Source: Thalia democratica | Lineage: Eukaryota | DNA: 64,000 nucleotides | Direction of reading: 5' to 3' | NCBI GenBank assembly: GCA_965202585.1 | Contig: OZ241826.1 | Span: 35,650,001 to 35,714,000 of the forward strand | Part shown: positions 4,903-49,965 of the stretch, piece by piece | Layout: each line of letters begins with the position of its first letter | Position numbering within the stretch: the stretch's first letter is position 1 | The notes under the pieces: model-generated | Databases searched by the model: none | Seen by the model: only the letters and a program-made list of their open reading frames with translations | Told to the model about the DNA's origin: nothing | Program-made: the position numbers and the translations under genes

Positions 4903-7900
4903 ATAATAATAATAAGGCCCGCTATCAGCCAAGATCGGCTATGCGTGTTGTGCACAGAGAAAAAAATTACATGTTTAAAAAAAAAAAAAAACAATTAAAT
5001 TCATTCTGCTTCTTATTTCTTTATCTTCTTCTTCGTTTTTCTAAAATATTCCTTTTCTCTTTCTTGCAGTCTTTTGTGTATAGTTGATCTCCATTTGGCA
5101 CGGTCATTTGCAAGCAACTCCCAATCATCAGTTCCAATGTTCAAGCTTTTTAGGTCGCGCTTGCATACATCCTTAAAACGTAATTTAGGACGTCCTCGGT
5201 TTCGTTTGACAACGACCAACTCGCCATACAATAGAAACTTTGTGATCCGCTCAGTATTCATTCTCAGGATATGACCGAGCCAGCAAAGCCTGCGCTGACT
5301 GAGGGTAAAGTACATAGTGGTAAGACCAGTACGTCTCAATACTTCCTCATTGGTGATCTTTGGTATTGATTTTCTTCTCCTGTACGCTAGGTAACGTCCA
5401 TGTCTCGCTACCGTAAAGCAGAGTACTGCAGACACAGGAACGGTAAACGTTAGCCTTTGTTCGAATGCTTAGCTTTTGGTTATCCCAAACTCTTGCAGTC
5501 AAGCGAGCGAAAGTGCCTGATGCTTTGCCAATGCAACTATTTATTTATTTGTCCAATGATGCGTTTGACGCAACACTTGAGCCAAGGTATACAAAGTTAT
5601 CTACATTCTCGATATCCTTACAATTGATCTTGATTGATGGTAAAATATTTGTTCCTTGACTTAGAATTTTAGTCTTCTTAAGGCTTATAGTAAGGCCGAA
5701 ATCCGAGCATGCCGAAGAAAACTGATTCAGCAGTGTCTGCAGGTCTTGGGCGGAGTGAGCCACGAGTGCAGCATCGTCAGCAAATAAAAGATCACGTATG
5801 GTGACTTTCTTCAGATTTCGCTTAGCTCTTAGATTTGAAGGGTTGAAAAGGTGTCCGTCAGTTCTTGTATGAAGCTTGATTCCAGTAGTTAATGAATTAA
5901 AAGCATGCTTTAATAGCATCGAAAAGAAGATTTCAAACAAAGTTGGAGCAAGTACGCAGCCTTGCTTTACCCCACTTTTGATTTCAAATGAATCAGATAC
6001 ACTACCATCATATTGAATGGTTGCCCTTGTGTTTGTATAAAAAAACTTCACAATTTTGAATAATTTTGGAGGACATCCAATTTTCAGCAGTATAGCATAT
6101 AGTCCTTCTCTACTTACCAAGTCAAAGGCTTTAGTGAGGTCAATGAAAGCGATGTACAAAGGCATGTTCTGCTCATTACATTTCTCTGTAACTGACGTAC
6201 AGAAAAAATCATGTCGGTGGTAGATCTTTTAGACCTAAATCCACATTGAGACTCAGGATATACTCTTTCAGCCAGTTTCTGAATACGAGGAAGAACCACT
6301 CTTGCAAAAACTTTACCAGCAAACGCAAGAAGAGAAATTCCCCTGTAACTATTGCAGTCCGATCTGAACCCTTGTTTTTATATAAGACTATGATCTTAGC
6401 ATCACGCATGTCTTGTGGCACTATACCTTCTCTCCAACATTTGGCTAAAATATCATGTAAATGAGGTAACAAGCATGACTTACAATTGCGGACCAAGTCC
6501 GCTGGTATGCCGTCACTACCTGGAGCTTTCCACGGAGCCATCATATTAATGGCTTTACTGAGTTCTTCAGTAGTTGGTACGCTATCCAGGTCATCCATCA
6601 TTGGTAGACTATCCATTTTGTTAAGGGCATCATTAGTAACAATATTCTGTGTAGAATACAGAAGGGAAAAGTGTTGAACCCATCTACTCAACTGTTCATT
6701 CCTACTGTGTAAGATTTCACCAGTCTCAGATAACAAAGGTGATATTGACCTCTTTGTTGGTCCAGCTGCTTTTCTTATTCCTTCGTAGACTGATTTGGTA
6801 TCTCCTCTGTCAGCAGCAGCCTGAATACGGGCACTAGCCTTTAACCAAAACTCAGTAGCACATTTTCTAGCTGCCCTCCAAAAAATTTTTCTGGCTTCAC
6901 GAAGTCTATTAAGACACGTGTTACTTGGGTCACGTTGATAATCAACATGAGCCTGTCGCTTTTTCTTTAAAAGAGGAGATAAAATATTGATATTTTCTTC
7001 GAACCAGTCTTTGTTGGCATGTTTGTTCTTTAGAAAAGTTTCAAAGGCATTCTGATATATACTTTTTTCGATCCTAGACCAAGACTCAGAAGAGATGTGT
7101 CCGACGAAGAGACAGATGGCATCAGAGTTGGGAACTTTTTGATATTTTCCTTTTCCCGCATTGCACCTACATTTAGTCGAACTTTACGAGCTAAATTGTT
7201 TGAATTGTGCATGAACTTTTTTGAGATGTGCATTTTACAGCAGACCAAAGAATGATCGCTGTTGCAGTCTGCGCTTTGATATGATCTAGTTAACAGAACA
7301 TCGTTAATACGATGGCGTCTCACTAAGATAAGGTCTAATTGGTGCCAGTTTTTAGAACGGGGATGTCTCCAAGATACTTTATGCTGCCATTTAGTTTTAA
7401 AAAATGAATTGGTAACACAGAGGTTCTGTTTATGACAAAACTCTAAAAGGCGTTGACCATTAGAATTCATTCTTCCAAAACCAAAATGTCCTAGACAGGG
7501 AGCCCAAGAGTCGTGATCAGATCCAACTCTTGCATTAAAATCACCCAGAATAACAAGTTGGTCGTTTTTTGGCAATTTATTCACTACGAGATTTAACTTT
7601 TCATAAAAAGTATCTTTAATTTGCTCGTCAGTGTATAGCGTAATTTCTTTAATTGAGCCTTGACCAGCAAGGCGCGTTTCTTGAAGAGCTGCAATATCAA
7701 CTTTAAGACGAAGAAGTTCGTTATTTATAATAGCAGTTTTTCTTGCATCATTTATGTTTTCGGGGTCCATACCAGTAGTCATGGTACGAACGTTCCAGCT
7801 TCCCAGTTTAAGAGTGGGTCTCTTTTTATGTTTATGTTTGTCAGGTGACATAGTTTCAGTTTACTTTTCATTTAAAGCTATCCCCATTCACCCAATGAGG

Positions 7901-25280: not shown

Positions 25281-26747
25281 ATGTATAATGATATGGTATC
25301 GAAAAAACCTGTAAAGAAGTTAAAGTTTATCTGTATTCAGAAATTATTTAACTTGAATAACTTTGACCGTAATTCATATAACCAACAGTCTTTTGAAACT
25401 GTTTTAAATGTCTTTCAAAACTTTGGTCTTGTTTTTTCTAAGTCTGTTCTTAGAGATGCTTTTACAAAACAGAAAAATTACTTTAATTTTTTTATCTGGT
25501 TTTGTGCTAGTTTCTTATGGTCTGATAGAGTTATACCGTCAATAATGAAAGATTATAATGCAAGTATTTTTACAAAATGGGTTACTAAATTTTGTCAAAA
25601 TCTAGAAGAAAGCAAAATTGCTAGTGTTATATACTACAACAAAATAATTTCCATTGCTTTACCATTAAAGCACTTGCATAGTCAAAAGTTTAAAAATCAA
25701 TTATTTTTTGATCATCTAATGTTTAGTTACAAACCACTGAGAGTTTCTGAAAACGAGAAACATAAATCATTAAAATTGACAGTTTTCAATTGTAATACGG
25801 TATCTAAGATATTTAAGTCACCTACAGTATTTTTTGATTCGGTTAAAGAAGTCACTTTTAGTATTCGGGATGCTTTGAAAACTTTAGGAAATCCTGTAAT
25901 TAAGTGCAATGTTAAGACTTACTACAATTTAATGTTATACTTTTTATCTCATTCTTACACATATTTGTATTTTAACAAAATTCATTCGTCTTTCAAACAA
26001 GATGCTCTTTGTCTCTTCAAATTTGTAAGCAAGAATATGTTAAACAAAACAAACACCAACCTACAGAAAAATGAAAGAAGTTTTAAAACTAAATTAAATG
26101 ATTTAAAATATCTACAAGAAGTTGAACTGAATTTAATTGATGTATCAAACAATGAAAAAAGGTCAATAATAAAAAGCTTGAATCAAGACTTGAAAACTCT
26201 TAAAATTTTTTTTCACCAGCCTATAAACTTCTTAATGTTTGTTGGAAAAAGATTTAAAAAGTTACAAACGTTAGACGTAACAATTAGAAAAAATAGTGAG
26301 GGTTATCAAAGCAATTTTTTTACTCGTTTTAACAAACGAAATGTAGTTGTTTTTGACAGCTTAAGAGAATTAAAACTTAACATCTCTGGTTTTATTGCAA
26401 ACCCACCTAGATTTTTATCAGATACTATTTTAAATATTCTGAGAGGCTGTCGAAACACCTTAACAAAACTCGAATTAGAATTTTACAGTTTCGACAGCAT
26501 CTCAGCGATAGTAAATTTTATTTGCTCGACAAAGATGCCTCTTAAGTTCATAAGTTACACATTTTGCCACAGTTTGACCCACAGACACATTTGGAAAATT
26601 GTAGAATCTTATGGCAATCGTGAGTTGCTTGTAAAAGTATATGACTGTGATAAAATTACAAAAAGAAAGTTAAAATACATATTTGAACATATCAAGAAGA
26701 ATAATCTAAGTATAAAAGTGGAAAACATAATCTTTTCAGTTGATTAG
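25281..26747 (+). CDS. 488-aa single-exon protein, putative BC-box (Elongin BC-binding) plus degenerate leucine-rich repeats
   Basis: A 1467-bp uninterrupted ORF in very AT-rich DNA. N-terminal KLKFICIQKL fits the LxxxCxxxL BC-box pattern. The C-terminal half has LxxLxL-type units (LQEVEL, LKTLKI, LQTLDV, LRELKL, LTKLEL, LKFISY...C..L). A splice acceptor TTTTGTTTCAG at ~25220 suggests a 5' UTR intron. Confidence 0.75.
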   Translation: MYNDMVSKKPVKKLKFICIQKLFNLNNFDRNSYNQQSFETVLNVFQNFGLVFSKSVLRDAFTKQKNYFNFFIWFCASFLWSDRVIPSIMKDYNASIFTKWVTKFCQNLEESKIASVIYYNKIISIALPLKHLHSQKFKNQLFFDHLMFSYKPLRVSENEKHKSLKLTVFNCNTVSKIFKSPTVFFDSVKEVTFSIRDALKTLGNPVIKCNVKTYYNLMLYFLSHSYTYLYFNKIHSSFKQDALCLFKFVSKNMLNKTNTNLQKNERSFKTKLNDLKYLQEVELNLIDVSNNEKRSIIKSLNQDLKTLKIFFHQPINFLMFVGKRFKKLQTLDVTIRKNSEGYQSNFFTRFNKRNVVVFDSLRELKLNISGFIANPPRFLSDTILNILRGCRNTLTKLELEFYSFDSISAIVNFICSTKMPLKFISYTFCHSLTHRHIWKIVESYGNRELLVKVYDCDKITKRKLKYIFEHIKKNNLSIKVENIIFSVD

Positions 26748-35025: not shown

Positions 35026-38000
35026 TTGGTACTGTTATCTAGATTTTTTTTATCCATAGTAACTTTTTTAGATAGTTTTCATCTTTCACAGAAAACATTT
35101 ACAAGAACAAAAGTCTAAGACTCTATGATATTACTATATGCAACATTTAACTTATTACAATTTATCTTCGTCTTTCAGCCAGTTCTAACTATTTATATAA
35201 AATCTTAGTTTTTACAATTAGTTTTAAGGGAAAAAATATCTAATGTTAACTCCTTTTAGAGGTTATATCTAAAGGTTTCACTGAAATAAAGTATGAATAT
35301 ATTGCTTTAAGTTAATAACTTCGTCTTGTAACTAAAAAAAGTTCCACATAAAAAAAAGAATAAATTGATAATAACTCGAAAAGAAGCTATAAAAGTTTTA
35401 AAATAAAGGAAATCACTTAAACATTTTACACATCTAACTTTTTTGAAATTTTTATAACATTTCAAAACACTAATATTTAATCAGTTTTCATCCTCTACAG
35501 CTATTTGCAGCTTAAGAAAGTTAAATGTTGCTTTTCTAGAAGTACCTATGAACTTAAAAAGAAGTAGTATGTTGTACAAAAGAGCTAGAAATGTTGTAAA
35601 ATATATAAATAATAAAAATCTTAAGGTTGTACTAAAAATAAATAAAATAAATTTTTTTCATTTTTCTATATAATGTTTATTAAACAATTCAAAATAAACT
35701 TTTCTGTGTTCTTTAAAATATATTTGACAGCTTCGTTTGTATTATACTAGAATAATCTGTAGTACTACGTCTAACCTTTTTTATATTATACTAGAATAAT
35801 TTTTAGTGACACGTCATGATTAAGTATCGTGTATTAACTAAAACCAATTACTAATTTTTTAGGTGTTTTTAATATATATATTTTATTTGTACTGTACCCT
35901 AACATTCTGCTTGTAAGCTATCTAAAACTTTAATTGCTCATCATGCTAAAAAAACGTTTTACTCTAAACGAGGTATATTAAACAATTTTTTTAGTTTGTT
36001 TTATTTTAGTAGTTTCTATTTTAGAAAAAACTACTTTTCAACATTTTTCTAATGTAAATTATTAACTATTTTTGTTAATAAATTATTAACCAGCTTAAAC
36101 ATTACAGATTACAGTATATCGTTGAAAAAACTTTTTATACCTTTGCTAGCTTAAAATGTGTATTTAAGTATATAAGTAGTTAAAGTATCTTATCTATTTT
36201 AATTGTGCAATTTTTTATATTTTTTTCTTCGCACGTTTTTAAACAGTTTTGAAGTATTTAATCTTACAGTTTAATCTTGATTTGTTTAATTTATTGAATC
36301 TTTTACGTACATCTGGTTTTATTTGTTTTAAATAATTTATTTGTAATACATATATGCTTTTTTTCTTGGTAAAGCCGATGAAAAATTAAAAACAAAAATT
36401 GAAACTGAGATTTAATAGAAATAAAATTCCCCATATGTATAATATGTAGTCTAATACGTTTTTTTTTAGAAATTGTATTTTAAGTAGTTCTTTCGAATTG
36501 AATTTTGTCGTTTTGTCTATAGTTAATTACAAGTAGAATATCATATTATAAAATTTTAAAACATTTAATTGTAACAGACAAAACAAGCTACACAGCTAGA
36601 AACTATGCTATCTAAAACAAAATTAACAAGCGGTTTAGGTTTTTCATACTTTTCTTATATCACTACTACGAATAAAAAAAACCCGGATAAAATAAAACCT
36701 AGGGTAAATTCTATCTTAGAAAATACCATATATAAATATGAGTTGCCGTTTAGATTTTAATTTTTGTATAAGTTTTTTTGCAATCTTTGTAGTACGTAAA
36801 CAAATAAATTCATTACGTGTTTTACTTAATACAACTTTTTTTTAAACTTTAAACAAACTTTTGTTAGAAATTTTAAATATTTTAAGAGAAACTTCTAAAA
36901 CTTTGATACTATATTAATAAAATATTTATATAAAATTTAAATAATTTATAACATGAATGTTTTTTTCTTTTTAATAATATTGATATAATTTTTTCAGTGT
37001 TAAACTTGGTTATATTTAAAGAGTAATTTTTAAACACAAGTTTAACCTTACTTAAACTTATTTCGATTTGTGTTGTTAGAAATCTATACAAAATGTTATA
37101 AAGTTAGCTTGATTAAAACATAAAGCAGTTGTTTGTAAAAACTTTTTAAGATTCTTAAATCATTTAACTGTTACAAAACTTTAGTTATTTACAACCAAAG
37201 AAAAATAGGACTGATATATATTTTACTTATAATGCTAGTCAGAAGCAATTTTTTTAACTTAAGTTCTTGAAATTCGAAGACATTTGTTATATTTGTAACT
37301 TTAGCATACAAACTATATCAAACTAATTAATATCGTTATGGGTATATCAAATTGTTGGTTACAAAAACTATAATTGAACATAAGTTGATATAAATTAAAG
37401 ATCAATGATCTTGTCTTAACTGAAGACTAATTTTTTCTAGATGTTTATTTGAAAATAAAATCAAAAATTTAGTTAAGATGACACGTTTGCTTCAACTTAA
37501 ACTAGCTACAACAACTGGAAAATGTTTTTATCATCTTTTTGAAAAATGAAAAATCCAGAAAGTCTGAAATTATAAAAAAAAAAGCATGTTAGTTATATTT
37601 GTTTTTGTACATTTACAGTTTTAAAGAGACATAATTAAGTCAATTTTTGCATCGTTCATTTTTTTTCGATAATTAATCATTGCGATTGAATTTAGAGAAA
37701 TAAAAGTTTTTATTGAGTAATTTTTTGTTGAATTTTATCTTATTTTTTACACTAGTATTTTCGTTAAATAACTATTTTAGACTAGTTTTTAGTAAAGAAA
37801 ACTTTTACATAAACTCTACTAACAATTTTAAATAAAGCAAGTTTGATTCCTGGTTAAGAATTGTCTTTTGAAACTATTTTATTATTAAAACTTTTACTAG
37901 TTTTGTTGACCTAGTTATATACTATGAACTGTTTGGCTTATGCTAAAGATAGCTTTATTAACATTAATGACGTTATATAAAAATTGATATTCCTAATATT

Positions 38001-39315
38001 ATTTTTTTAACTAGGTTTTACTAGTAATTTTACAAAATATACAAAGTAGAAGTTGCCTAAAAATTATAATTCGTTCTAAGATTTAAGCTACCGGAATAAC
38101 AACTTGGATCTCAGTTAGAAAACTTTGTCGACACTTTTTTATACATCTAGGTGCAGAATTTTATTGGCAAAAAAACACACTTTTTACTTTATCATATTCT
38201 CATTTTTTAAAAATTAAAATCCTAAAATAAACTTTAGTGTATGTTGTTTTACTATCAGAGAATAGTATTTTGAAACCTCACATTATATAACTTTGTTATA
38301 CTTAGTACAATGATTTCCATGACTTACCATGATTAGAGTTTTTGTAAACCTAGCAGTTGCATTTGATGTACGTTCTTACACAGTGATTATCGTACGTTTA
38401 AGTCAACCAAATATTTGTTGAAACTGTAACTCATGTGATTCAATCAGTTGTAAGATGTAAAACTTGTGACGTAATTGTTTATCAGTAGCCACATGACGAT
38501 CTAAGTTTAAGACATTTCCGCAGCTATATTTACATTATATGTTTAAAACTAAACTTAAAACTGGCAAATAACTAACCGTAAAAAATTTAGAAACAAGCCT
38601 GATGTACTAAAACACTTTTATCAAAAGTAACTTACAGTTCAAAATTAAAACAATTTTTAGTAAAAATAGTTTTTAAAACTTCTTCATTACGTAAAAAAAT
38701 CATTATTAAGAGATTTAGTGAGTCTTGTTTTAAAATAAGTTTGTATTACATTTATCTTTCACAAGCAAATTTGTTAAAACTGACTTCAGGCCGGGATTTT
38801 AGTTGATTGTTCAATTCATAGCTTGATGATCCGTATTGAAAGTTGGTATAATACTACCAAATAAAAAAAATTAAGAACAAATTTAAAGAACAACCAGACT
38901 TGTACACGAAACAAATAATGTTTTATTATAAACATCCACTACTACCATTTAAAAGAAGACAAACAAGTTCATACTAAGTAAAACATACTTATAAATACTA
39001 TAAATCAAAAGCTATAACAAAAAACACAATTGCAGGTCAAAACCTGCTAAATGAAAAATTCATTAAAAATATAGTTTTACAAAATTTCAAAACAAGAGAT
39101 ACTACTTTACCTATTACTTTATACCTCCTACCTAGTTTTTTTAAATTAAACCAAATGTTTAAATAAAACAACTTACATAAGTCTATCGGTTCAATGTAGT
39201 TTGTTTTTTCATAGTTTATTCATATCTTTAGTTTAATGAAATGTTAAGTATTAAAATAAATACAAACTAGAACCGAGTGATTTTGATATTTTCGTTTTGC
39301 TAGTCTACGTTGATC

Positions 39316-40055
39316 GAACATACAGTAGCAAGCTAGGAAGAAGCATACAGTAGCAACTATGAACGAATATACAATAGCAAGCTAGGAACGAGCATACAGT
39401 AGCAACTATAAACCAACATACAGTAGCAAGCTATGAACGAGTATAGAGTAACTGTACACGGGTCATATTCGCTCGAAGACGAAATTACACAAGGGCACTA
39501 AATTGCACGTGGGCGCAAAATTGCACGAAGACAAACTTGCAAGAGTGGACTAAATTGCACGAAGACCATTTTGCACCAAGAGTTAATTTTGCAAGATTTA
39601 CATTTTTGGACGAGAGTAAAAATATTAATAACAAAAATATATTAATAAAAAAAAAGAATATACAAAAATAAATCAACTAAAATAAAAAAATGCTACCGAC
39701 CGAGGGTAATGATTAGAGGTAACAGTGAAAGTAAAAAAAATAACTAATCAAAAAAAAGAGTTACCGACCGCGAGTAAGAGTTAGGGATAACTGTGACAGC
39801 AAAAAAAAAATACAAAATATATATAAGATACAACTTATTAAAAAAATTAAAAAAAGAAATTCAACCCCTGAAAAAATATCTCCGTGCAAAATTGTCTGCT
39901 CGTCCATAAGTTTCTTCGTCAATTTTGTGCCCTCGTGCAATTTTGTACGCAAGTGCAAATTTGACAGCTACCGACAATAACTATCTTTGAACGAGCGTAC
40001 AATGGTAAGCTATGAACGAGTATATAATAAGTAATAACAAGCTTTGAACGAGCTT
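39316..40055. repeat. 24/25-bp alternating minisatellite (49-bp dimer), interrupted by a MITE
   Basis: GAACGAGCATACAGTAGCAACTAT (24) alternates with GAACGAATATACAATAGCAAGCTAG (25). About six units at 39316-39453 and about three decayed units after 39973. Confidence 0.85.
39454..39972. mobile_element. Mutator-like MITE (TGCACGA subterminal type) inserted in the minisatellite
   Basis: AAATTGCACGA repeats on the left and TCGTGCAATTT on the right. End GTGCAAATTTGACAGCTACC. TACCGACCGAGGGTAA core. Confidence 0.75.
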
Positions 40056-42093
40056 GCACTTGCTAGCTTATACCATGTGACTTCACGCTTGAGTAAACAT
40101 CAATGCTCAATTTTTGTAGCGTTCGAGTAAAATTTTGCTTTGTAAACTGACCAAACAAAGTATTTAAACGAGCACTTTCAAGCTGCATGGCAGAATGTTT
40201 AACGCTTGAGTGCACATCGTTAGTAATACATAGTGATATGCAGTTATCCTTACATCCCCTTGCGGACATTATTATGAATGGTAAATAGTCTACAAGCATT
40301 GATGCTTTAACTATTAAAGTTTATCATTTGAAAGCTGTAAGTTTTGTTGACAAATCACTACTTTATAAACCTTGTTTGACTATTCGCTTAAAAGACTTTT
40401 AAGTTTCATATGAAATTTAAAGAAGTTAAGTCTAAGCCAGAGTTTTCAAAAGTTGGCAATAACTATTAAAGCGGCGAAAAATTAAACGAACAATGAACTA
40501 GTAAGTGGACGTAATCTAATAAATGGGGCAATTATTTCTTAATTTAAGCCAAGGGGTCGTTTATGAAAATAAGTTAAGGAGATCCTTGTAACTTTGTTAG
40601 TAAAAATACGGCAAAGTAAAAATATGGCTTAAACTATGTAAAATATAACTGCATTGATTGTGTTTCTATTCATTATCAGTTTTTTTAACAGATATAAATA
40701 ATCAAAGGAATTTTTTTAATATAAGAGTTGACTTTCGTGTTTCAAAAACATTACTTAATTAAGCTTTAAGTAGTTTAATTACATTTTGTTTAACTAGTTT
40801 TACTACTTATGTCAAATGCTTTTAGTTCTAGTCATCTATGTTTATATTTTATATTTTGAAATGTAAATTTATTAATTTTAAAAAAAATTTTTAGCCAACA
40901 ATTTGATTAACTTAGATTTATTAATATATGAACTTTTTTTACTTTTTGGTTTCTTTAAAAATGCTGTAGTAATAAAATAAAGGAGTATATAAAAATATTT
41001 TCACAATAATTTGTTTGCTCCCATTGAATTTTATTAAACTTATGGGAATTCTTTATAGGTGTATATATTTTTAGCTAAAATATTACAAAATACATAGTTA
41101 TGTAAACTATTTTATGTCTAAGTAAGTTATTTTTAATAAAAGGAAATTAAATATCTAACCTAAGTCATATTTGAAGTCTAAGTTATAAATTTGAAATCTT
41201 TCCGTATTCTTTTATTCTTTTTGTTTTAAACTATACACAAATTAGCTATAAAATCTTTAAAACAAAAAAAAATAGTTAAATTACATAGACAAATCAACAT
41301 AACTATCTAAACAAGTTACAAGTAATAAATATCCCGAAAAAACACGATGCTAATAAAACTTAGTTTCATTTTTTAATTGTTATTCTTTTTTTTTTTATTG
41401 TACTTCTTTAGAATTTAATACGGTTTTTATATTCATATTACTACTACAACAAATAGTATGTTTTAAAGCGGTTAGCTTTAATTTTAGCACATATTATGAA
41501 TTAAAATCTAGTTAAAAAATTTCTTAGTTAATATTTCAAACCACTCTGAAAGTTCTGATGTTTTTTAGCTATCAGTTATTTACGGAATCCACAACCGAAA
41601 CCATCATCTAAAGTCAATATTCTAAAATAAAAAAATGTTTTTGTCAAAGTATAAGTCGAGTGAAAATTAATGCTCAATAAATGGTCAAACTGATTGTGAA
41701 AATAAATATTTTTTATATATTACCGGTATGATTGTCATACTTATTTGTCAAGAACCTTCTGGTGCTAAACAAATGGTCAAGCTGAATTAACTTAAGTGAT
41801 GTTCTAAATTTTGAATCAAACAAAATTTGAATATCATTAAATTTTAAATGATATGGTAAAAAAAAGGTTGTCTAGCCCAGAGTTGGTAAAATGCTAATAG
41901 TTACTATGGTAATTCAGCAATGAAGCGTATAAACTTTGGTTTGTTTTAAGTTAGTAATTTCACGCTCGAGTAAACAAAGCAGAGCTTTTTAACATGTCTG
42001 GTCTAGCCGAAATAAACTGATTGCTGATGCTTAAGAAATTGTAAAACAGAAAATTCTTTAAGTGAAGCTTTAAATACTGAACACAACAAAAGT

Positions 42094-42490
42094 GGGTAGA
42101 TGTCAAATTTGCACGGGCTACAGAATTGCACGAGCGCACAAAAGTGCACGAAGATACTTTTGCATGAGCAAACAATTTTGCGCAAAGACTTTTTTTACAT
42201 GGGTTAAATTTTTAATTATATATTTTTTTTAATTGAACTATTTTTTACTATTGCTGTTACTCAACCCTTACCCGCGGTCAGTAATTTTTTTTCTTTTTTT
42301 TTAGTTTTTTGTTTTTGTATTTTTTATTCTCGTGTAAAATTAACCCTTGGTGCAAAGTTTTTTTCGTGTAATTTTGTTCCCTCGTGCAGTTTTGTGCCCT
42401 CGTGCAAATTTTGTTCTGTCGCAATTTAGTCATTCGTGTAATTTAGTAACCTCGTGGAGTTTTGTCTTTGTACAATTTAGACCCGTTCCC
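42094..42490. mobile_element. Mutator-like MITE (TGCACGA subterminal type)
   Basis: GGGTAGATGTCAAATTTGCAC ... TTTAGACCCGTTCCC, with a 9-bp TSD AACAAAAGT/AACAAAATT (42085-42093, 42491-42499). Confidence 0.8.
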
Positions 42491-42574
42491 AACAAAATTG
42501 CCTGTTCTGCTGTAGCTCACTACATTCAAAGTTACATCCAATGACTGATTAACTTTGGTTCGTTATGACCAAGC

Positions 42575-44260
42575 TTCTTCAAGCAGTGTCACACAAATGA
42601 ATAAGGTAGTTTAAGTTTGCCGCAATGTATGCGGATTTAAATATTCAGAATAATGCTAGAGTTTTGTGAAAAATACAATTTACTTGACGTAAACTATCTC
42701 AACCAGTGATGCGTTTGTTTGTGAGTTATGATGTAATTATTTATTACTTAAAGATTATTAAATTATGACGTCACTTTCTGAGAATACTGGCAGTGGTGTT
42801 TAGCTCACATATTAACTTTTGATACTTCTAATTTTTCATTAGATAATAGTCTAAAAGCCATTTTCAAAGTCCTGAAAATGCTTCATACAAAACTAAATAC
42901 TTAAAGATCTTGATGTACTTTAAAGTTGTTTAGATAAAAAAACAGCTCGTTAGTTTAATGTTTTTAAATTTAAATTGTTTAACACCAAAAGTTTTAGAAA
43001 ACTTCAACAAGTACAAAATATATAAACACTTATTTAATTTTTTTACAGGACGTGTTTTTGAGCTGAAGAAAAAACGAATTTTATTATAAATTTTTAATTT
43101 TTATGATTTAAAAAGTAAAAAAAAAACAGATGTCTTTGTAAAAGTCAGTTGGTTATTGATTCTTAAAATATAGTAAAACTGATTCAAAAAATATATACTT
43201 TAGAATGTTTCTCCATTGTTACTCTCTAGTCATTGAGCATTTAAAGTATAAAATAATGTTTTCACAGGACCTTCTGGTATATATAACGAGGAATGTTGAA
43301 AAACTCGGAAAGGGAAAAAGTTCAACAACCTAGCCAAAGAGATTCAGATCTCAAAGACTATAAAAAACCATTGCCCTTTTAATTGAGTGGAATTAACAGG
43401 TGACATAGTATAAGTCAATCGGTTGCTGGTAATTAACAAATGGTTAAGCTACATTAAATTTGAATGCATAGTTCTGTATTTTGAACTAAAAAAATTCAGT
43501 GATGTTTTAACTCACTAAATCCGACTTAACTTCCAATACCTGCATTGCTTCGTTTTTGAAAACAAAACCGCTTCAAGGATGGTGGCACTAAAGGTGCGAA
43601 GTAGTAATTAGTTCAAGATAGCCGCAGAGTATGCAGCTGTAAAAATTCGGATTCAACTGAATCTTGCTCGATCAGCTCAGATGTACAACTTTCACAGATT
43701 TCTCAATTTATTTTTATTAGTGACGCGTTTGTTTGTGGGTTATGACGTCATCATCAATTAATTAAAGATAATTAGATTATGACGTCACTTTCTGAGAACA
43801 TTGTCAGTAGTGTTGAGGTTACTTACTGCTGATGTTACAGCTTTTAACATACAATATTCTAAAAACTATAGAGTTTGAACTAATTCTTCACATAAATTTA
43901 AATTTTTTTTTTATCAAGTTGTAATTTAGACAGATCTAGACAAAAAATAACAACTCGTTAGTTCAATGTTTGTAAAATATTAAGCACAACAAGTTTAAGA
44001 AAACATCAGTAATACGAAACTTCAACTGTATACGAAAATTCTTGTTTGATATTGTTACAGGAGTCGTATTTGAAAGAAACAAAATTCGGATATCATTGTT
44101 AGGCTTCAAATTAAATGAAAAAAAATCAGGTGTCTAAACGTAAGTCCACTAGTAAATTGGTGGTTTATGAACAACTAAACTTTCGCAGAAATTAATATTT
44201 TGGTTTCTTTTACCAGCATAATTCTTTAGACATTGAAAGAAAACGTTCAAATTTATTTTA
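42575..44260 (+). repeat. ~1-kb-period tandem duplication carrying CRE+STAT-like motifs
   Basis: Colinear blocks GCCGCA..GTATGC (42619/43621), GCGTTTGTTTGTG.GTTATGA (42711/43725), ATTATGACGTCACTTTCTGAGAA (42762/43776) and CTCGTTAGTT (42948/43954). Confidence 0.75.
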
Positions 44261-47200
44261 GCACATTCCCTTCTGATGCTTGTAACGAAGATGTTTAAAA
44301 GTTTCTATCTTATCTAGAAGATTCATATCTCATCGACTAAAAAGTGAACTAAATACCTTTAAAGTATCTTAAGATTTCCAAAGTTAATATTTTTTTCTTT
44401 AAAAAACTCCAACTAGATAAATTACACAATATATATAATATTAGACTTTAGTCAATAAATAAAACAATTAAAAAAAACATTTGTTTGTTAATTTATAAAG
44501 TCTTATAAACTTTTAAAACTAACACAAATTGTTCTAGATATATAAAGCAACAAAATATTAGTCTTAGGACTTTTTATGTAGGTTTTTATACACAATTTCA
44601 GTATATATGATACAAATGTTTGCTATTAAAGAGTCTTTTTATAACAGAAATTGTTTTAGTTTAGCAAGCACTAAACTCCGCTTAATTTGAGATAATTTTT
44701 TATATAGTATATATTTAATTTTAAAATAGCATATGACTTAAATTACATTTTAAACCTTATTAATGTTTTAAAAATGTACAAGGTTTAAGGTGAAGTATTT
44801 ACTCTAACATGAATAAACTCCACTATTTTTAAAGTTTAGCTATGTATACAAAACATTTTTGTACTTAGAATATGAAAAACGAATTCACAATTAGTAAATA
44901 AAAGTGTTAAGTTTGAAAATTGTATATATTTTGTACACAATTGATAACAAATGTAGCTTGTTTTGGTCGTTTTTATAATCTGCGTAAGATTAAAACATTG
45001 TATGATGCTTTTTACGGTTTTAAAAAACAAACAATAAAGTTTTCGAAGTACTTTAAGAATTAACTTATAACAAAACTAAAATATGTAGAACTAAGCAACG
45101 CATATAAAATTTTTTTACTTACTTAACTTTTAACAAAAAACCGTCCTTAATATTCTGTATAAACTACGTATATACTAAACCACTAGTAAGATTTTTGCTT
45201 AATAAAAGAGGTATACTCTTAAGATTATTGTAACTTTAGACAAGACAAAATAATTTTTTAGCTTCAATCAATTATGGTATCGTGTGATTAACAGCTTGTA
45301 TGATATCATATTTGTAAACAAGCTGAGATATATAATTGGTCTAGTATGTAAAACTTATTTGTGCTATTGCATACGTATTAGTAAATATGTGTATTAGTAT
45401 CAAATTTTCTACTACTGAATACGTGAAGTAAGTATATAAAAGCTTCTTAGGCAAGGTAGCAAAAAGTATTTTGTTCAAAAAAGCAGCTCTTAGCCATCTG
45501 ACTTTAACTAGTTGTTTGTTTTTTAATTATTTTTTGAAAAGCAAAAAGTATAGCAAAAAACAAAGGCTTGTTATAAAAATTTAAATAAAACGCTGTTGAA
45601 ACAAATATAAGTAACAAAATCGAAGACATATTTATAAATTAAAACAAATAGATTTTTTTTACATAATATGATTGTTATTATTTTGATTAGTAGATATGCA
45701 TTGGCATATTGCAATATGAAAAGAATAATCAGTAAGTACTTTTTACTCAAGTTGTTTATCATTGAATATTTACTTATATCATGGATATATTGTAAACAGA
45801 AAAACGTAATTGTTTTGACAAAAGTTGTTTAGATATTTTCTTGACTTAGTTTCATGTATAATTACGAAATAACGAACTTGTTTACTTTATATCTTTATCA
45901 TCTTAAAAATAATAAAAGGCTTTATTACAGTACATAAAACATTTTTTTAATAGTTCTGTAGTTTATCTAAACAAAAAACATTACTTGATATACTTATACC
46001 ACACCATTGAGTTAACTACTTTTGAACTTATCAATTAACTGATAAACTTATGAAAATAACTGTAAATTTTCAAATTAAATTAATTTTCATGAAATGTAAT
46101 AATACTTTGAATAATAACTCTAGCCATTTTAATTATAACTAATTTTAAAATGAAACTTTGATAAAATGGTACATAACAATCGTTATATGTAATTCTAAGT
46201 TACAGTTTAAATAAGTTAATAAACACAGTTTTGATACCTTATTTTATAAACTAGTCGTCCTTTTTAAACACATTTTGATATTAGGCTTAGATTGTTCTAG
46301 GTCTTTTAGTTTAAAAAATACCATAAACCTTAAGTAACGAACAAATATGTTTTAATAAAAGACAACACGTATTTATTGTCGAAAAGTTAAAAATTTTGAC
46401 GGGTTTTTTAGAGGCTATGGTTAAAACTAAAATGTATACGTTTTTGGTTGCCTTATTATATATTAGTTTAATTGTTAAATAATATATTTTAAATTTTGTA
46501 TATTAATTCAATTCACACTTTAGTTTAGTTATTACAAAGGGTTAACATAAAAACCAATGCTTTTAAGTAGATGTAAAAAATTTTTGAATTAAAAAAAGTT
46601 ACTTTTTGTTAGTAACTTACTAATTTGCAATAAAAAAACTACCACTTTATAGATATTTAGGAATTTGTATAATAAAACAGCTTTAATTCGAAAATAACTA
46701 TGAATAAATTCGTTATTTCAACAACAATGCATTTTTGTCATTCTAGAAAAAAGCTTTTTTTTGAATAAAAAAGAAATGTCTTATTTGTAATATTTGTAAC
46801 AAGACACACTTTTTCGTTTATTGTTTATTGTAAGTGGTTGTAAAATATTTACCGAGTTGCCGACTAAAATAGTCTGCTGTAAAAAGTACAATTTATTCAG
46901 TAAACCGACTTTTTGACCTATGAAATTATGTTTTTTATTTAAGTTTTACAAATCAAATCGTAGACGAAAATGTTTAATGTTATATATTAATTTTCATGTT
47001 AATAAAATATGAATTTTAATCTCTGCACAATTTAAAGTAATTTATTTTGTTTAAACTTGAATATGTATTATTTAAAAAAAAATATTTTAAAGCTTTACAT
47101 ATCAATTTGTTTTTTCATTGTTTTTTTTGTACATAATACTTATTTCAACTTAAACTTTTTACAAATGCATCTTTAAACTCTGTCAGATTAATTATAGTTC

Positions 47201-47725
47201 ATTTTGTGTACTTTACTTTAGTCAATTACAATTTTAAAAAAATTTAGAAAGAAAATTCTTCGTAGACGTAAAAATTGGTAGTACTAAATTTACTTATTAA
47301 CATCTTAAACAAAAGCTAATAAAAAAATTACTATTTTATGTTGTCATTACAGTACTGTTTAGTAGTTTTTGAGTAAAAGTTGTGTTAGTTTTATTGAATT
47401 TCTACACGAGAAGCTTACGACATTCATAGATTTTTAGTAATTACATTTTTATTGTTATGAAATGATAAATAAAATTTATAAAACCTTTCTTCCGCATTTG
47501 TTGTTACTAAATAATTAAAATTTCTAAAATCGGTTATATTCAACGAACTTCTAAACTAAAATTAAAATGGTATTTAGTATTGAAAAAACTAATTAAATTT
47601 GAGGCTTTTCTCCTTTTAGCTTAACCATCTTATAAGCAGTGACAAGACTTTAAAACAAATATTCGCATAGAGTTGCGTGAGCTAGTTAACAAAACACTGT
47701 TTTAAAACTTAAAATTACTGTTTTG

Positions 47726-48604
47726 ATGTCAGAACAACGTTTCATAGTAGTAAACAAGTTAAAACCTTTCAAAGAAGCCATTGACGAATGTAAACACTTA
47801 CAGTCTTTTCTTGGTACTGACTTTACAGTTCAAAATGGTAAAATTGAGAACAAAATTTTAAATAAAAGTTTGCCGTTTAAGTTCTATCGTATTGGATTGA
47901 GCTTCAACAACAGCATAGGTACTTGGGCAAACAACGTAACTTATGACGAGAAAGTTAGGGAGAAAGTGAGAACTTTCACAGACAGATCAGGATACAAAGA
48001 AGTTGTTGTTTCTCGCGACGACAAGCATCTGTATTTAACTTCGGCTGAGAAAAAGTACGGGTTCATATGTGAGAAAAATAACGAATTCAGTACCTCTCGT
48101 CTTAACACCACCAATACAAATAAAATAAATACCAGTGCTAGCAATCTGACTTGGTTGTTTTTACTTCTGCCTGTTTTGGTAGTAGCAGTAGTTGCAACAA
48201 TCTTTATTGTAAAAAAAAATAGGAGAAAGAAAAAAGTGCGAAGTCAATTGGAGCATTACAGAGAAGCAGGGTTGAAAAACTCAATGAGCAATCCAACGTA
48301 CATGTCAATCGAACTTTTGCACGGTGAATCTCCTACATACGAAACCATTCAAGAACCTTTCAACAAATTCCCCACGTATGAAAATGTTGGAGAACCTTTG
48401 AACGAATTTCCTTCATTTGAAATTGTTGGAGAACGTTCTAACGATCGTAGGTCTTCCTTGATGGCTGAAACGAATTTAGCTTTGAATTTCAGGGCTGAAA
48501 GTAAAGATTCGTCATTAGTACCAAGTACGGTTAACTGTGGCGATAAACACAAGGAAATTGAGGATTTGTATTCAGTTGTTAACAAACCCAAAAAGAAGCA
48601 GTGA
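47726..48604 (+). CDS. Single-pass membrane protein: divergent C-type-lectin-like domain, Asn/Thr-rich stalk, TM helix, tyrosine-motif-rich cytoplasmic tail
   Basis: CTLD hallmarks: F..A..EC......L, YRIGL (WIGL-like), terminal FICEK. Six N-glycosylation sequons before the TM segment WLFLLLPVLVVAVVATIFIV, followed by a basic KKNRRKKK stop-transfer. Tail contains NPTY, YMSI, YETI, YENV and YSVV. No signal peptide in this ORF. Confidence 0.8.
   Translation: MSEQRFIVVNKLKPFKEAIDECKHLQSFLGTDFTVQNGKIENKILNKSLPFKFYRIGLSFNNSIGTWANNVTYDEKVREKVRTFTDRSGYKEVVVSRDDKHLYLTSAEKKYGFICEKNNEFSTSRLNTTNTNKINTSASNLTWLFLLLPVLVVAVVATIFIVKKNRRKKKVRSQLEHYREAGLKNSMSNPTYMSIELLHGESPTYETIQEPFNKFPTYENVGEPLNEFPSFEIVGERSNDRRSSLMAETNLALNFRAESKDSSLVPSTVNCGDKHKEIEDLYSVVNKPKKKQ
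48329..48445 (+). repeat. 39-bp coding tandem repeat x3
   Basis: SPTYETIQEPFNK / FPTYENVGEPLNE / FPSFEIVGERSND. Confidence 0.85.
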
Positions 48605-49965
48605 ATTTGTGTAATTAAGCTGTATATGTCTATTTTTTATAAACACTTGCAGTAAATAATTTTTAGATTTTAAAGGTAAAATATTTCCATGTAATACTAG
48701 TTCGAGTTATATTTTGTTTTATTAACTACAAAAAGTTATTTTAAAAAAACTGTTTTGTCAACATGAAATTATTATTTTACTCTTAAAATATAAATACTTT
48801 GTAAACTAAATTGATATATTAGTTACAAATAAGCTTTTTTTTTTAGTGTTTAAATTTTTCAATCAAACTTAAATAAAGTAAGAAAAGAAATATTTTTTAT
48901 TTTTTATATGTGCAGTTTTTTATTACACACTTGTTTTTAACTGATACTTATAACGAAATACTGGTTATTACTTTATTCCTAAAAAAAGTTATTTGATATT
49001 TCGAATTTAGGAATGCTTTTATAAAACATAGCGATTATAATTTCAATATAAAAGACTTATCTTTATAAAACTATTAGTTAATGGTTATTATATATACGTA
49101 AAGGAATTGAATTTTTAAATTCTTAAACTATATAATGTTACCTAAAATTTGCTAATTGCTTTCATTTAAAACTGTTGGTTATGTAAACTTAAATGAAGTA
49201 GTAAAATTAAACTTTAAAATAAATTTTTAACTTTAAAACTCGAATCTTTTTACTAATTTAAAAACAAAAAAATGCAATGTGAAAAATATATTAAACATAG
49301 ATTAACTTTACTAGAGGAGTTTGAAAAAATTTTGACAGATCAATAAATGTTATATTTGTAAGAAAAATTAATTACAATAATGAATACAAATATATTATAA
49401 TAAAGAAGTTGTTTTCCACTTCTGTACAAACGTCTTATATTTAACAAGTATTTTTTTATAATTTTATATTAAATTAAATTTATTTTAAGACCATGTATCT
49501 CAAAACTAAAGCTCATTATTTATTGCACTTAAAGCTCTGTGAATTATAAATAAACTGAATAAGCTACATATTTAGCGTTGTTTCGTTTTCAATTTTTTTT
49601 TTGTTATAAAACAAACTTTAGTATTAAATATAAAACTAACTAAACAAATTAGTTCATCACTAAAATTTTATTTGTATTATTTATAAAAATAGTTTTGTTT
49701 GTGTGTTATTTTAATAAGACATCGTTCTAAAATTAAATAAGAGAGTATTTAAAATCAAATATTAAGACTATAGTAGAAACATATTAAACAATTAAAAAGC
49801 TAATGCAGTTAAAAACTACAGAGTTTTTAACAACCACAAAAATTAATAAATTTTTCTGAGCTTGAATGTAAACTCAATAAAAATTGTTTTAACATTACCA
49901 GTGCTTTAACAAAAATAACTTGTCATGAAATTATTTCTTACATTTTCAGGCATATCAGACTAGAT

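Follow-up and report, generated by a model that had tools for sequence, protein, structure and literature searches.

A candidate receptor gene with a diverged C-type-lectin head and a tandemly repeated tyrosine-motif tail in the pelagic tunicate Thalia democratica

Introduction

Tunicates are the closest living relatives of vertebrates, and to our knowledge almost nothing is known about the recognition receptors of pelagic tunicates. Here we describe a gene in a 64,000-nucleotide stretch of the Thalia democratica genome (GenBank assembly GCA_965202585.1, contig OZ241826.1, positions 35,650,001 to 35,714,000 of the forward strand; this whole stretch is called the window below, and positions are window positions unless another sequence is named). 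Its predicted product, the window protein, has a divergent C-type-lectin-like domain (CTLD) as an N-terminal head, followed by a stalk, one transmembrane helix and a tail of conserved and partly duplicated tyrosine motifs.

The closest analogues in layout are layilin and chondrolectin, which also have a single N-terminal CTLD, one transmembrane helix and a tail of ~120–130 residues with repeated short motifs that include YxxΦ (Φ, hydrophobic residue) sequences (PMC2132847). The window protein lacks two features of layilin, its cleavable signal sequence and its talin-binding repeats ESG[FW]V and N[DE]IY, and neither the sequence nor the fold evidence puts the window protein closer to layilin than to other CTLDs. 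The best structural matches are instead the natural killer (NK) and myeloid CTLD receptors (CLEC5A, KLRG1, CD69, NKR-P1, Dectin-1 and DCIR; template-modelling (TM) scores by target of 0.64–0.74), which likewise lack Ca2+/sugar-binding motifs, have probable non-sugar ligands and form large, clustered, fast-evolving families. They signal by tail tyrosines arranged in hemITAM or ITIM (immunoreceptor tyrosine-based activation, ITAM, or inhibition motif) sequences, and the window protein fails the strict ITAM, ITIM and hemITAM rules. They are also type II proteins (tail, transmembrane helix, stalk, CTLD) with two to three disulfides, whereas the window protein has the opposite predicted orientation, one disulfide and 14–21% identity to them. 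The window protein is a member of the CTLD superfamily, but of neither the layilin nor the NK/myeloid receptor family.

Tunicates themselves have CD94/NKR-P1-like receptors, in Botryllus and Ciona (PMC5465252). A haemocyte receptor of Halocynthia roretzi, a tunicate membrane glycoprotein cited in the same paper, is like the window protein in its paired cytoplasmic YxxL/I signalling motifs; as portrayed in that citation it has another ectodomain, not described as a CTLD, and the window family's motif spacing is x9–x14 where the canonical one is x6–8. Type I signal-anchor (type III) proteins, e.g., the synaptotagmins, resemble the window protein in having no cleavable signal peptide and a positive cluster past the hydrophobic segment, which in them drives translocation of the N-terminus, and they have the N-out/C-in orientation that is predicted for the window protein (PMC3784385). 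However, their N-terminal domains are usually short, and here the head is 140 residues long (up to ~350 residues precede the membrane helix in paralogues) and contains disulfide-forming cysteines.

A single-exon gene and its relatives

The coding sequence is a single intron-free open reading frame (ORF) with no interruption. The features of the gene up to the tail, with the evidence for each in brackets, are as follows (dN/dS, ratio of nonsynonymous to synonymous divergence).

47610–47619, + strand: candidate 3′ splice or trans-splice acceptor, ctccttttag (sequence)
47620–47725, + strand: putative 5′ untranslated region of 106 nt, ATG-free and closed in every frame (frame scan)
47726–48604, + strand: complete coding sequence, 292 codons plus TGA in one exon (ORF length, G+C content, dN/dS of 0.33 against the paralogue with Fisher p = 2.7e-6)
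47741–48076, + strand: divergent CTLD, residues 6–117 (Pfam Lectin_C, AlphaFold2, Foldseek)
48077–48145, + strand: stalk, residues 118–140 (23 residues), with sequons NTT, NTS and NLT (sequence)
48146–48211, + strand: transmembrane helix, residues 141–162 (hydropathy 3.16)
48212–48241, + strand: Lys/Arg cluster KKNRRKKKVR, C-terminal to the transmembrane helix (charge asymmetry)
48872–48877, + strand: candidate poly(A) signal, the sole AATAAA/ATTAAA in the 600 nt past the stop (sequence)

A stop-free run of 292 codons is expected by chance with a probability of ~3e-12 at the base composition of the window, and the G+C content of the ORF is 36.4%, compared with 22–24% in the 5-kb flanks on each side (the range within the window is 21–39%, mostly 22–26%; the Thalia democratica value is 25.3%, PMC13746493). 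We consider the gene to be real and probably functional. The original prediction, a reading of the letters alone, had placed CTLD, stalk, membrane helix and tail in one exon, which the uninterrupted frame bears out, and had begun the feature at 47620, which must be amended: coding begins at the ATG at 47726 and, since all frames are closed from 47620 to 47725, the most that position 47620 can mark is the base directly following the candidate acceptor. Relatives likewise have a polypyrimidine-AG 13–35 nt ahead of their ATGs (13–106 nt across several members), and the candidate acceptor AG of the window gene is absent from its paralogue L002. Such an upstream polypyrimidine-AG would be in keeping with the addition of a spliced leader, or with a first exon that is non-coding.

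The window gene has many relatives. A profile search of the genome found at least 108 family copies at E ≤ 1e-8, nearly all of which encode the complete domain in a single uninterrupted frame of 150–540 codons, unlike the canonical CTLDs of the same genome, which are mostly split over exons. A full-length paralogue, L002, lies 49 kb downstream (C1:35746782–35747660; 83% amino acid identity), so a search for paralogues, which the original prediction had put forward as a check, succeeded close by, and the third subfamily member in the genome, L003 (339 residues), is on C7 and is 47% identical in the CTLD. A library of 1.84 billion representative proteins returned 223 matches, the best of which are ORFs on ENA marine metagenome contigs, including those of Tara Oceans, with the same layout as the window protein. 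P0003 is the counterpart of L003 (93% nucleotide identity over 3.3 kb). A further member of the subfamily, P0014, occurs in four samples and shares 36% identity with the window protein in a full-length comparison.

The head is a diverged C-type-lectin-like domain

The modelled fold and the family profile both confirm the head as a CTLD. An AlphaFold2 model of the head made on a 10-sequence family alignment has a mean predicted local distance difference test score (pLDDT) of 74.6 and a predicted TM-score (pTM) of 0.70, and Foldseek finds 213 PDB matches to it at E ≤ 1e-3; all 50 among the matches listed are CTLDs with probability 1.00 and TM-scores by target of 0.51–0.74. Leading these are CLEC5A, KLRG1, langerin, CD69 and Dectin-1 (0.64–0.74, at 14–21% identity). 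The Swiss-Prot AlphaFold matches are also all CTLDs, and those among AlphaFold database clusters are mostly named CTLD proteins. At the sequence level, a profile of ten ectodomains compared with PDB sequences matches the CTLDs of PLA2R, DEC-205, snake-venom lectins (snaclecs), CLEC4F and NKR-P1; the same PDB sequence search with the single window protein gave no match. Pfam Lectin_C (PF00059) scores 18.2 bits with the whole protein (E = 4.5e-3) and 20.4 bits with the domain alone (E = 8.7e-4), values that are under the gathering cut-off of 22.6 bits, though positions 3–107 of the 107 in the profile are covered. The same profile matches nine of ten paralogues (best E = 2e-7), with L004 above the cut-off at 26.8 bits.

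The only ectodomain cysteines of the window protein, Cys22 (47789–47791) and Cys115 (48068–48070), correspond to the outer (C1–C4) disulfide and are invariant across the family, and YRIGL occupies, and aligns with, the WIGL position of the fold. At the inner (C2–C3) positions, the window protein, L002, L003, P0003 and P0014 have Gly and Ala instead of cysteines. The wider family has six conserved ectodomain cysteines, with the inner pair present in most members (s-C-YEVIV ... x-C-G), and both the inner pair and an N-terminal hairpin pair have been lost in the window gene and its three nearest relatives. None of EPN, QPD and WND is present in the window protein sequence, and the canonical combination of EPN or QPD with WND was found in none of 35 family proteins scanned, five of which have an isolated WSD/WND, EPK or stalk EPN. 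A CTLD with the outer cysteine pair only and without these three motifs is what had been predicted, and the modelled fold now agrees with it. Because the Ca2+- and sugar-binding residues are absent, the head is more likely to bind a protein or other non-sugar ligand.

The tail carries conserved and duplicated tyrosine motifs

The tail is 130 residues long, and no secondary structure is predicted in it; the full-length model, which is confident in the transmembrane helix only, says little about tail disorder. Its features are the following.

48290–48310, + strand: NPTYMSI (NPxY plus YxxI), with NPTY at residues 189–192 and YMSI at 192–195 (N, Y, S and I invariant in the subfamily)
48329–48445, + strand: three tandem 39-bp (13-residue) units, residues 202–240 (Tandem Repeats Finder, unit alignment)
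48338–48349, + strand: YETI, motif of unit 1 (sequence)
48377–48388, + strand: YENV, motif of unit 2 (sequence)
48416–48427, + strand: FEIV, motif of unit 3 (sequence)
48446–48457, + strand: RRSS, putative basophilic-kinase-type site (Ser243 invariant in the subfamily; Ser244 not, being Ala in P0014)
48569–48595, + strand: terminal module YSVVNKPKK, with YSVV at residues 282–285 (Y282, V285 and K287 invariant in the subfamily)

A five-way subfamily alignment, in which the three non-paralogue rows are 37–42% identical to the window protein and which draws on two or more additional sources, Tara Oceans metagenomes among them, leaves the tail poorly conserved apart from N189, Y192, S194 and I195, then T204-Y205-E206-T207, and finally Y282, V285 and K287. 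These invariant positions define three conserved motifs, N-x-x-Y-x-S-I, T-Y-E-T-[IV] and Y-x-x-V-[ND]-K, so that three tail tyrosines are unchanged at this distance. The last motif belongs to a family-wide terminal module, [AVD][VLIM]-Y-[TSA]-x-[VI]-[ND]-K-x-K, of which we count 26 instances in 13 proteins (the window's EDLYSVVNKPKK included), and which occurs one to three times per tail.

The 39-bp periodicity is detected by Tandem Repeats Finder over 48352–48434 (2.1 copies, 81%, score 110), and the three units are 27/39, 29/39 and 25/39 identical to one another in pairwise DNA comparisons (64–74%). Unit 3 has Phe where the Tyr stood. Only one TYETV stands in each of L003, P0003 and P0014. 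The YENV and FEIV units occur only in the window gene and its paralogue, which has all three units, and the 39-bp duplication is therefore dated between the divergence of the C7 lineage and the segmental duplication described below. It added one tyrosine site, a pY-x-N of Grb2 type, and a further unit in which Phe has taken the place of Tyr. Multiplication of tail modules is a habit of the family, the window gene having multiplied a different module from the others.

When the ITAM pattern is relaxed to Yxx[LIV]-x(6-12)-Yxx[LIV], two motif pairs, YMSI-x9-YETI and YETI-x9-YENV, match it and are ITAM-like in this sense. The spacing of the corresponding pair is x9 in P0002 and P0012, x10 in P0014 and x14 in L003, and a Yxx[IV]-x9-TYxE[IV] pair with spacing equal to that of the window protein recurs in the distant members P0002 and P0012. 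At the −2 position of the tyrosine module the family has mostly A, D, E or H, with V in a few members.

The original prediction had listed NPTY, YMSI, YETI, YENV, FEIV and YSVV in the tail, and all are there, with the correction that NPTY and YMSI have one tyrosine, Tyr192, in common. Its proposal that a 39-bp tandem duplication raised the number of sites fits the distribution of units given above, and the invariant tyrosines answer its concern that the motifs might not be conserved in homologues. It had also held that the motifs match no strict ITIM or ITAM consensus; this stands for the strict forms, and the two relaxed ITAM-like pairs now qualify it.

A reading of the terminal ...KKKQ as a C-terminal KKxx endoplasmic reticulum retrieval signal was ruled out, as relatives have different ends.

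Possible signalling or sorting by the tail

We propose that the N-terminal 140 residues of the protein would lie outside the cell and the 130-residue tail inside, and that binding of a protein or other non-sugar ligand by the head, or clustering, would lead to phosphorylation of the tail tyrosines, most likely by a Src-type kinase. The phosphorylated tyrosines would then be read by SH2 or phosphotyrosine-binding (PTB) domain proteins, with the YENV supplied by the 39-bp duplication as an extra, Grb2-type site. Surface exposure, phosphorylation, SH2/PTB docking, the type of ligand and an immune role are all things that we infer. Potential readers are encoded in the genome, which has at least 29 SH2 exon matches and several SH2-kinase loci. 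One locus, C1:38016927–38031407 (− strand), ~2.3 Mb past the window, resembles SHP (PTPN6/11) in that two SH2 exon starts precede four matches to tyrosine-phosphatase exons on one and the same strand, and its product is a possible reader of the tail motifs. We favour phosphotyrosine signalling as the main role of the tail, a choice in which our confidence is evenly divided, because the conservation exceeds a bare YxxΦ and because the genome encodes SH2 readers.

A number of observations weigh against this proposal as a whole. The CTLD fold emerges only with the 10-sequence alignment, and a full-length AlphaFold2 model on five sequences has a pLDDT of 36.7. The NPxY motif and the YxN of YENV are confined to the window gene pair, the relatives having NVAY, of which only N-x-x-Y is kept. 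No motif has the strict ITAM spacing of x6–8 (it is x9 in the window protein), and none fits the ITIM pattern [SIVL]-x-Y-x-x-[IVL], the terminal D-L-Y-S-V-V having Asp at −2. A Syk-type tandem-SH2 kinase was not identified among the SH2 loci of the genome. The ORF has no signal peptide (its N-terminus is MSEQRF...), a lack that the original prediction had not remarked on, and a 140-residue head is long for signal-anchor translocation. The window ectodomain has six N-glycan sequons where 2.6 are expected, and the tail has none, but family-wide the ectodomain sequons (54 observed, 47.6 expected) are not significantly in excess. Lastly, no RNA run among the indexed sequencing runs contains the locus; the three runs that do contain it are DNA, and their contigs cover intergenic DNA too.

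YxxΦ motifs are read by the μ2 subunit of AP-2, and NPxY/NxxY motifs by PTB adaptors of the Dab2/ARH type. The tail tyrosines could thus serve, unphosphorylated, as sorting signals of an endocytic or scavenger (cargo) receptor of the mannose-receptor/DEC-205 or LDL-receptor sort, with the head capturing a ligand and the repeats raising the efficiency of internalisation. YMSI, YETI, YENV and YSVV all fit YxxΦ and NPTY fits NPxY; the YxxΦ motifs of layilin, the closest layout analogue, have been proposed as AP-2 signals (PMC2132847); the best PDB sequence matches of the family profile, PLA2R and DEC-205, are endocytic receptors; and the protein-language-model look-alikes of the window protein are mannose-receptor-like and layilin clusters (similarity 0.88–0.89, a lead only). 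Conservation of T-Y-E-T and [ND]-K-x-K, however, extends beyond YxxΦ and is not needed for AP-2 binding, and NPxY is not conserved. An endocytic receptor is a possibility that we take seriously but regard as the less probable role. Sorting and signalling roles are in any case not mutually exclusive.

Membrane topology and the translation start

The membrane segment lies within a helix, residues 139–185, that is the only confident part of the full-length five-sequence model, and its flanks differ in net charge, +8 on the C side and +1 on the N side. The C flank is net positive in 17 of 17 family members tested. The Lys/Arg cluster would set an N-out/C-in topology, as its charge suggests. Type I signal-anchors with downstream positive charges are known to translocate N-terminal domains (PMC3784385). 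As the ORF lacks a signal peptide, the transmembrane segment with its positive C flank would, by analogy, act as such a signal-anchor and translocate the N-terminal head.

This interpretation depends upon ATG 47726 being the true start, and we read it so because paralogues and metagenome ORFs also start at domain position 1. In all of the first ten paralogues and in most of 20 more, an ATG coincides exactly with position 1 of the domain profile (M-x-C is the start in the wider family). Stop codons lie within a few codons upstream of it, there is no common acceptor, and the implied intron phases differ between subfamilies; most of the top metagenome homologues begin at the same profile position. 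If the gene model were incomplete, and an upstream signal-peptide exon were spliced to the AG at 47731–47732 just past the ATG, the product would be an ordinary type I protein; both paralogues do retain ATG-N-CAG at the start, and leader-bearing forms exist in the family, L046 and L047 of the C4 31-Mb cluster having a hydrophobic N-terminal extension. Against this stand the recurrent start at position 1 and the lack of a common acceptor, and a motif scan of the 6.7 kb upstream for a leader exon turned up a single candidate, a hydrophobic exon that begins with ATG and has a phase-1 donor, whose joining would create a stop. A tblastx comparison with the C7 paralogue locus found the CTLD alone to be conserved; exon islands are not distinguishable with the paralogue or Tara loci, where similarity is too high throughout. 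We therefore think an incomplete model unlikely.

In L046 (C4:31408271–31410471, − strand) and L047 (C4:31207347–31209547, − strand) the in-frame hydrophobic stretch before the domain is 16–21 residues long, a possible signal peptide, and M-W-Y-K-N-P-[ST]-C comes directly behind it; the Met of this sequence is where most of the other members begin.

The tail might alternatively link the receptor to the cytoskeleton, as in an adhesion protein of the layilin type, with NxxY and the tail repeats binding FERM/PTB-like domains such as that of talin and not SH2 domains. The layout is that of layilin (~130-residue N-terminal CTLD, transmembrane helix, ~120-residue tail with repeated short motifs and YxxΦ; PMC2132847), layilin clusters rank 2–3 among the language-model look-alikes, and N-x-x-Y is invariant. 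Nevertheless, the tail lacks the talin-binding ESG[FW]V and N[DE]IY, the signal sequence of layilin (PMC2132847) has no counterpart in the ORF, layilin is absent among the fold or sequence matches listed, and look-alike scores below 0.9 are leads only, all of which makes such a linker very improbable.

Segmental duplication and purifying selection

The window gene and its paralogue lie in a segmental duplication:

36016–49639, unstranded: segmental duplication of ~13.6 kb, colinear with C1:35733564–35748687, which carries the paralogue (blastn, 65–88% identity in colinear blocks)

With dS at 0.245 and dN at 0.081 between the two genes, dN/dS comes to 0.33 across the whole ORF (Fisher p = 2.7e-6); taken separately, the tail gives 0.29 (p = 1e-3) and the CTLD 0.39. 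Purifying selection has thus acted since the duplication. Both copies remain open for 292–293 codons where a stop is expected every 11–12 codons. A silent or decaying duplicate, now out of use, could account for the lack of RNA runs containing the locus, the third repeat unit without Tyr, the loss in the subfamily of two of the wider family's three disulfides and the upstream acceptor that differs between the two copies, but two such open frames, a constraint that extends to the tail, and motifs kept across sources make this the least credible of the alternatives. In an allele check on the DNA runs, 14 of the 20 best-supported variant letters inside the ORF are the paralogue's letters (cross-mapping at 85% likeness), and because most are so, the variant letters are not alleles.

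A clustered family with two tail classes

Family members are arranged in tandem clusters, at C2:72452668–72521836, C4:30943494–32190085, C4:100529888–100560026, C7:31303616–31423427, C9:8049582–8099687 and other places; the C4 31-Mb cluster has ~30 copies with open frames of ~235–285 codons and short tails. Two tail classes can be recognized. Tails of the tyrosine class have Yx[ST][IV]-x9/10-TYxE[IV] and one to three copies of the terminal tyrosine module. Those of the second class (L004, L006, L009, L031, L033, L034, P0005, P0009, P0011 and P0021) have few tyrosines and a C-terminal end SFW[IV]HV-[SED]-E(C), which is not known to match a described motif, and may be a functional counterpart of the first. 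Many tyrosine-class tails (among them L039, L040, L044, L045, P0002 and P0010) end in a PDZ-ligand-like [DEKS]-x-I-V; the window protein stops directly past its last tyrosine module, without such an ending.

The original prediction had called the gene lineage-specific, and the only members seen outside this genome are indeed marine metagenome ORFs. An exact look-up of five ORFs of this genome found no public protein record, a word-index protein search found no match with the window protein and only P0003 and P0014 with the subfamily profile, two JGI metagenome scans gave no match, and a description of the family was not found in the full-text literature searched. An origin from a virus or mobile element was rejected, as there is no other ORF of ≥90 residues within ~8 kb on either side and the members stand in ordinary tandem clusters. 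Independent P0014 contigs (L026, L028 and L029, with L027 10 nt shorter) end at one place ~123 nt upstream of the ATG, by a T-run; this common end is probably a low-complexity assembly break.

As a large, clustered CTLD family with conserved tyrosine modules, these genes are candidates for self/non-self, microbe or prey-particle recognition in these animals. Tandem duplication has also given the family a graded range of docking- or sorting-site numbers, a series supplied by nature, and its apparently leaderless, cysteine-bearing lectin-fold ectodomain is a case for long N-terminal translocation by a signal-anchor. A more far-reaching idea, to which we give little credence at present, is that the at least 108 genes form a chordate-lineage innate recognition system independent of the vertebrate NK-type lectin receptors, made up of leaderless CTLD receptors inserted head first by their own membrane segment, in which the tyrosine class, with an ITAM-like pair and 1–3 VYxxVNK modules, and the class ending in SFW[IV]HV-E would be opposing (e.g., activating/inhibitory) partners and duplication of tail modules would tune signal strength.

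Other features of the window

Two further features lie elsewhere in the window.

5013–7851, − strand: remains of a non-LTR (long terminal repeat) retrotransposon, with endonuclease and reverse-transcriptase ORFs in pieces, 32–39% G+C and so richer than its surroundings
25281–26747, + strand: 488-codon open frame, rich in Asn, Lys and Phe, unmatched in Pfam and lacking an exact public record

At the local base composition the 488-codon frame is far too long to have arisen by chance.

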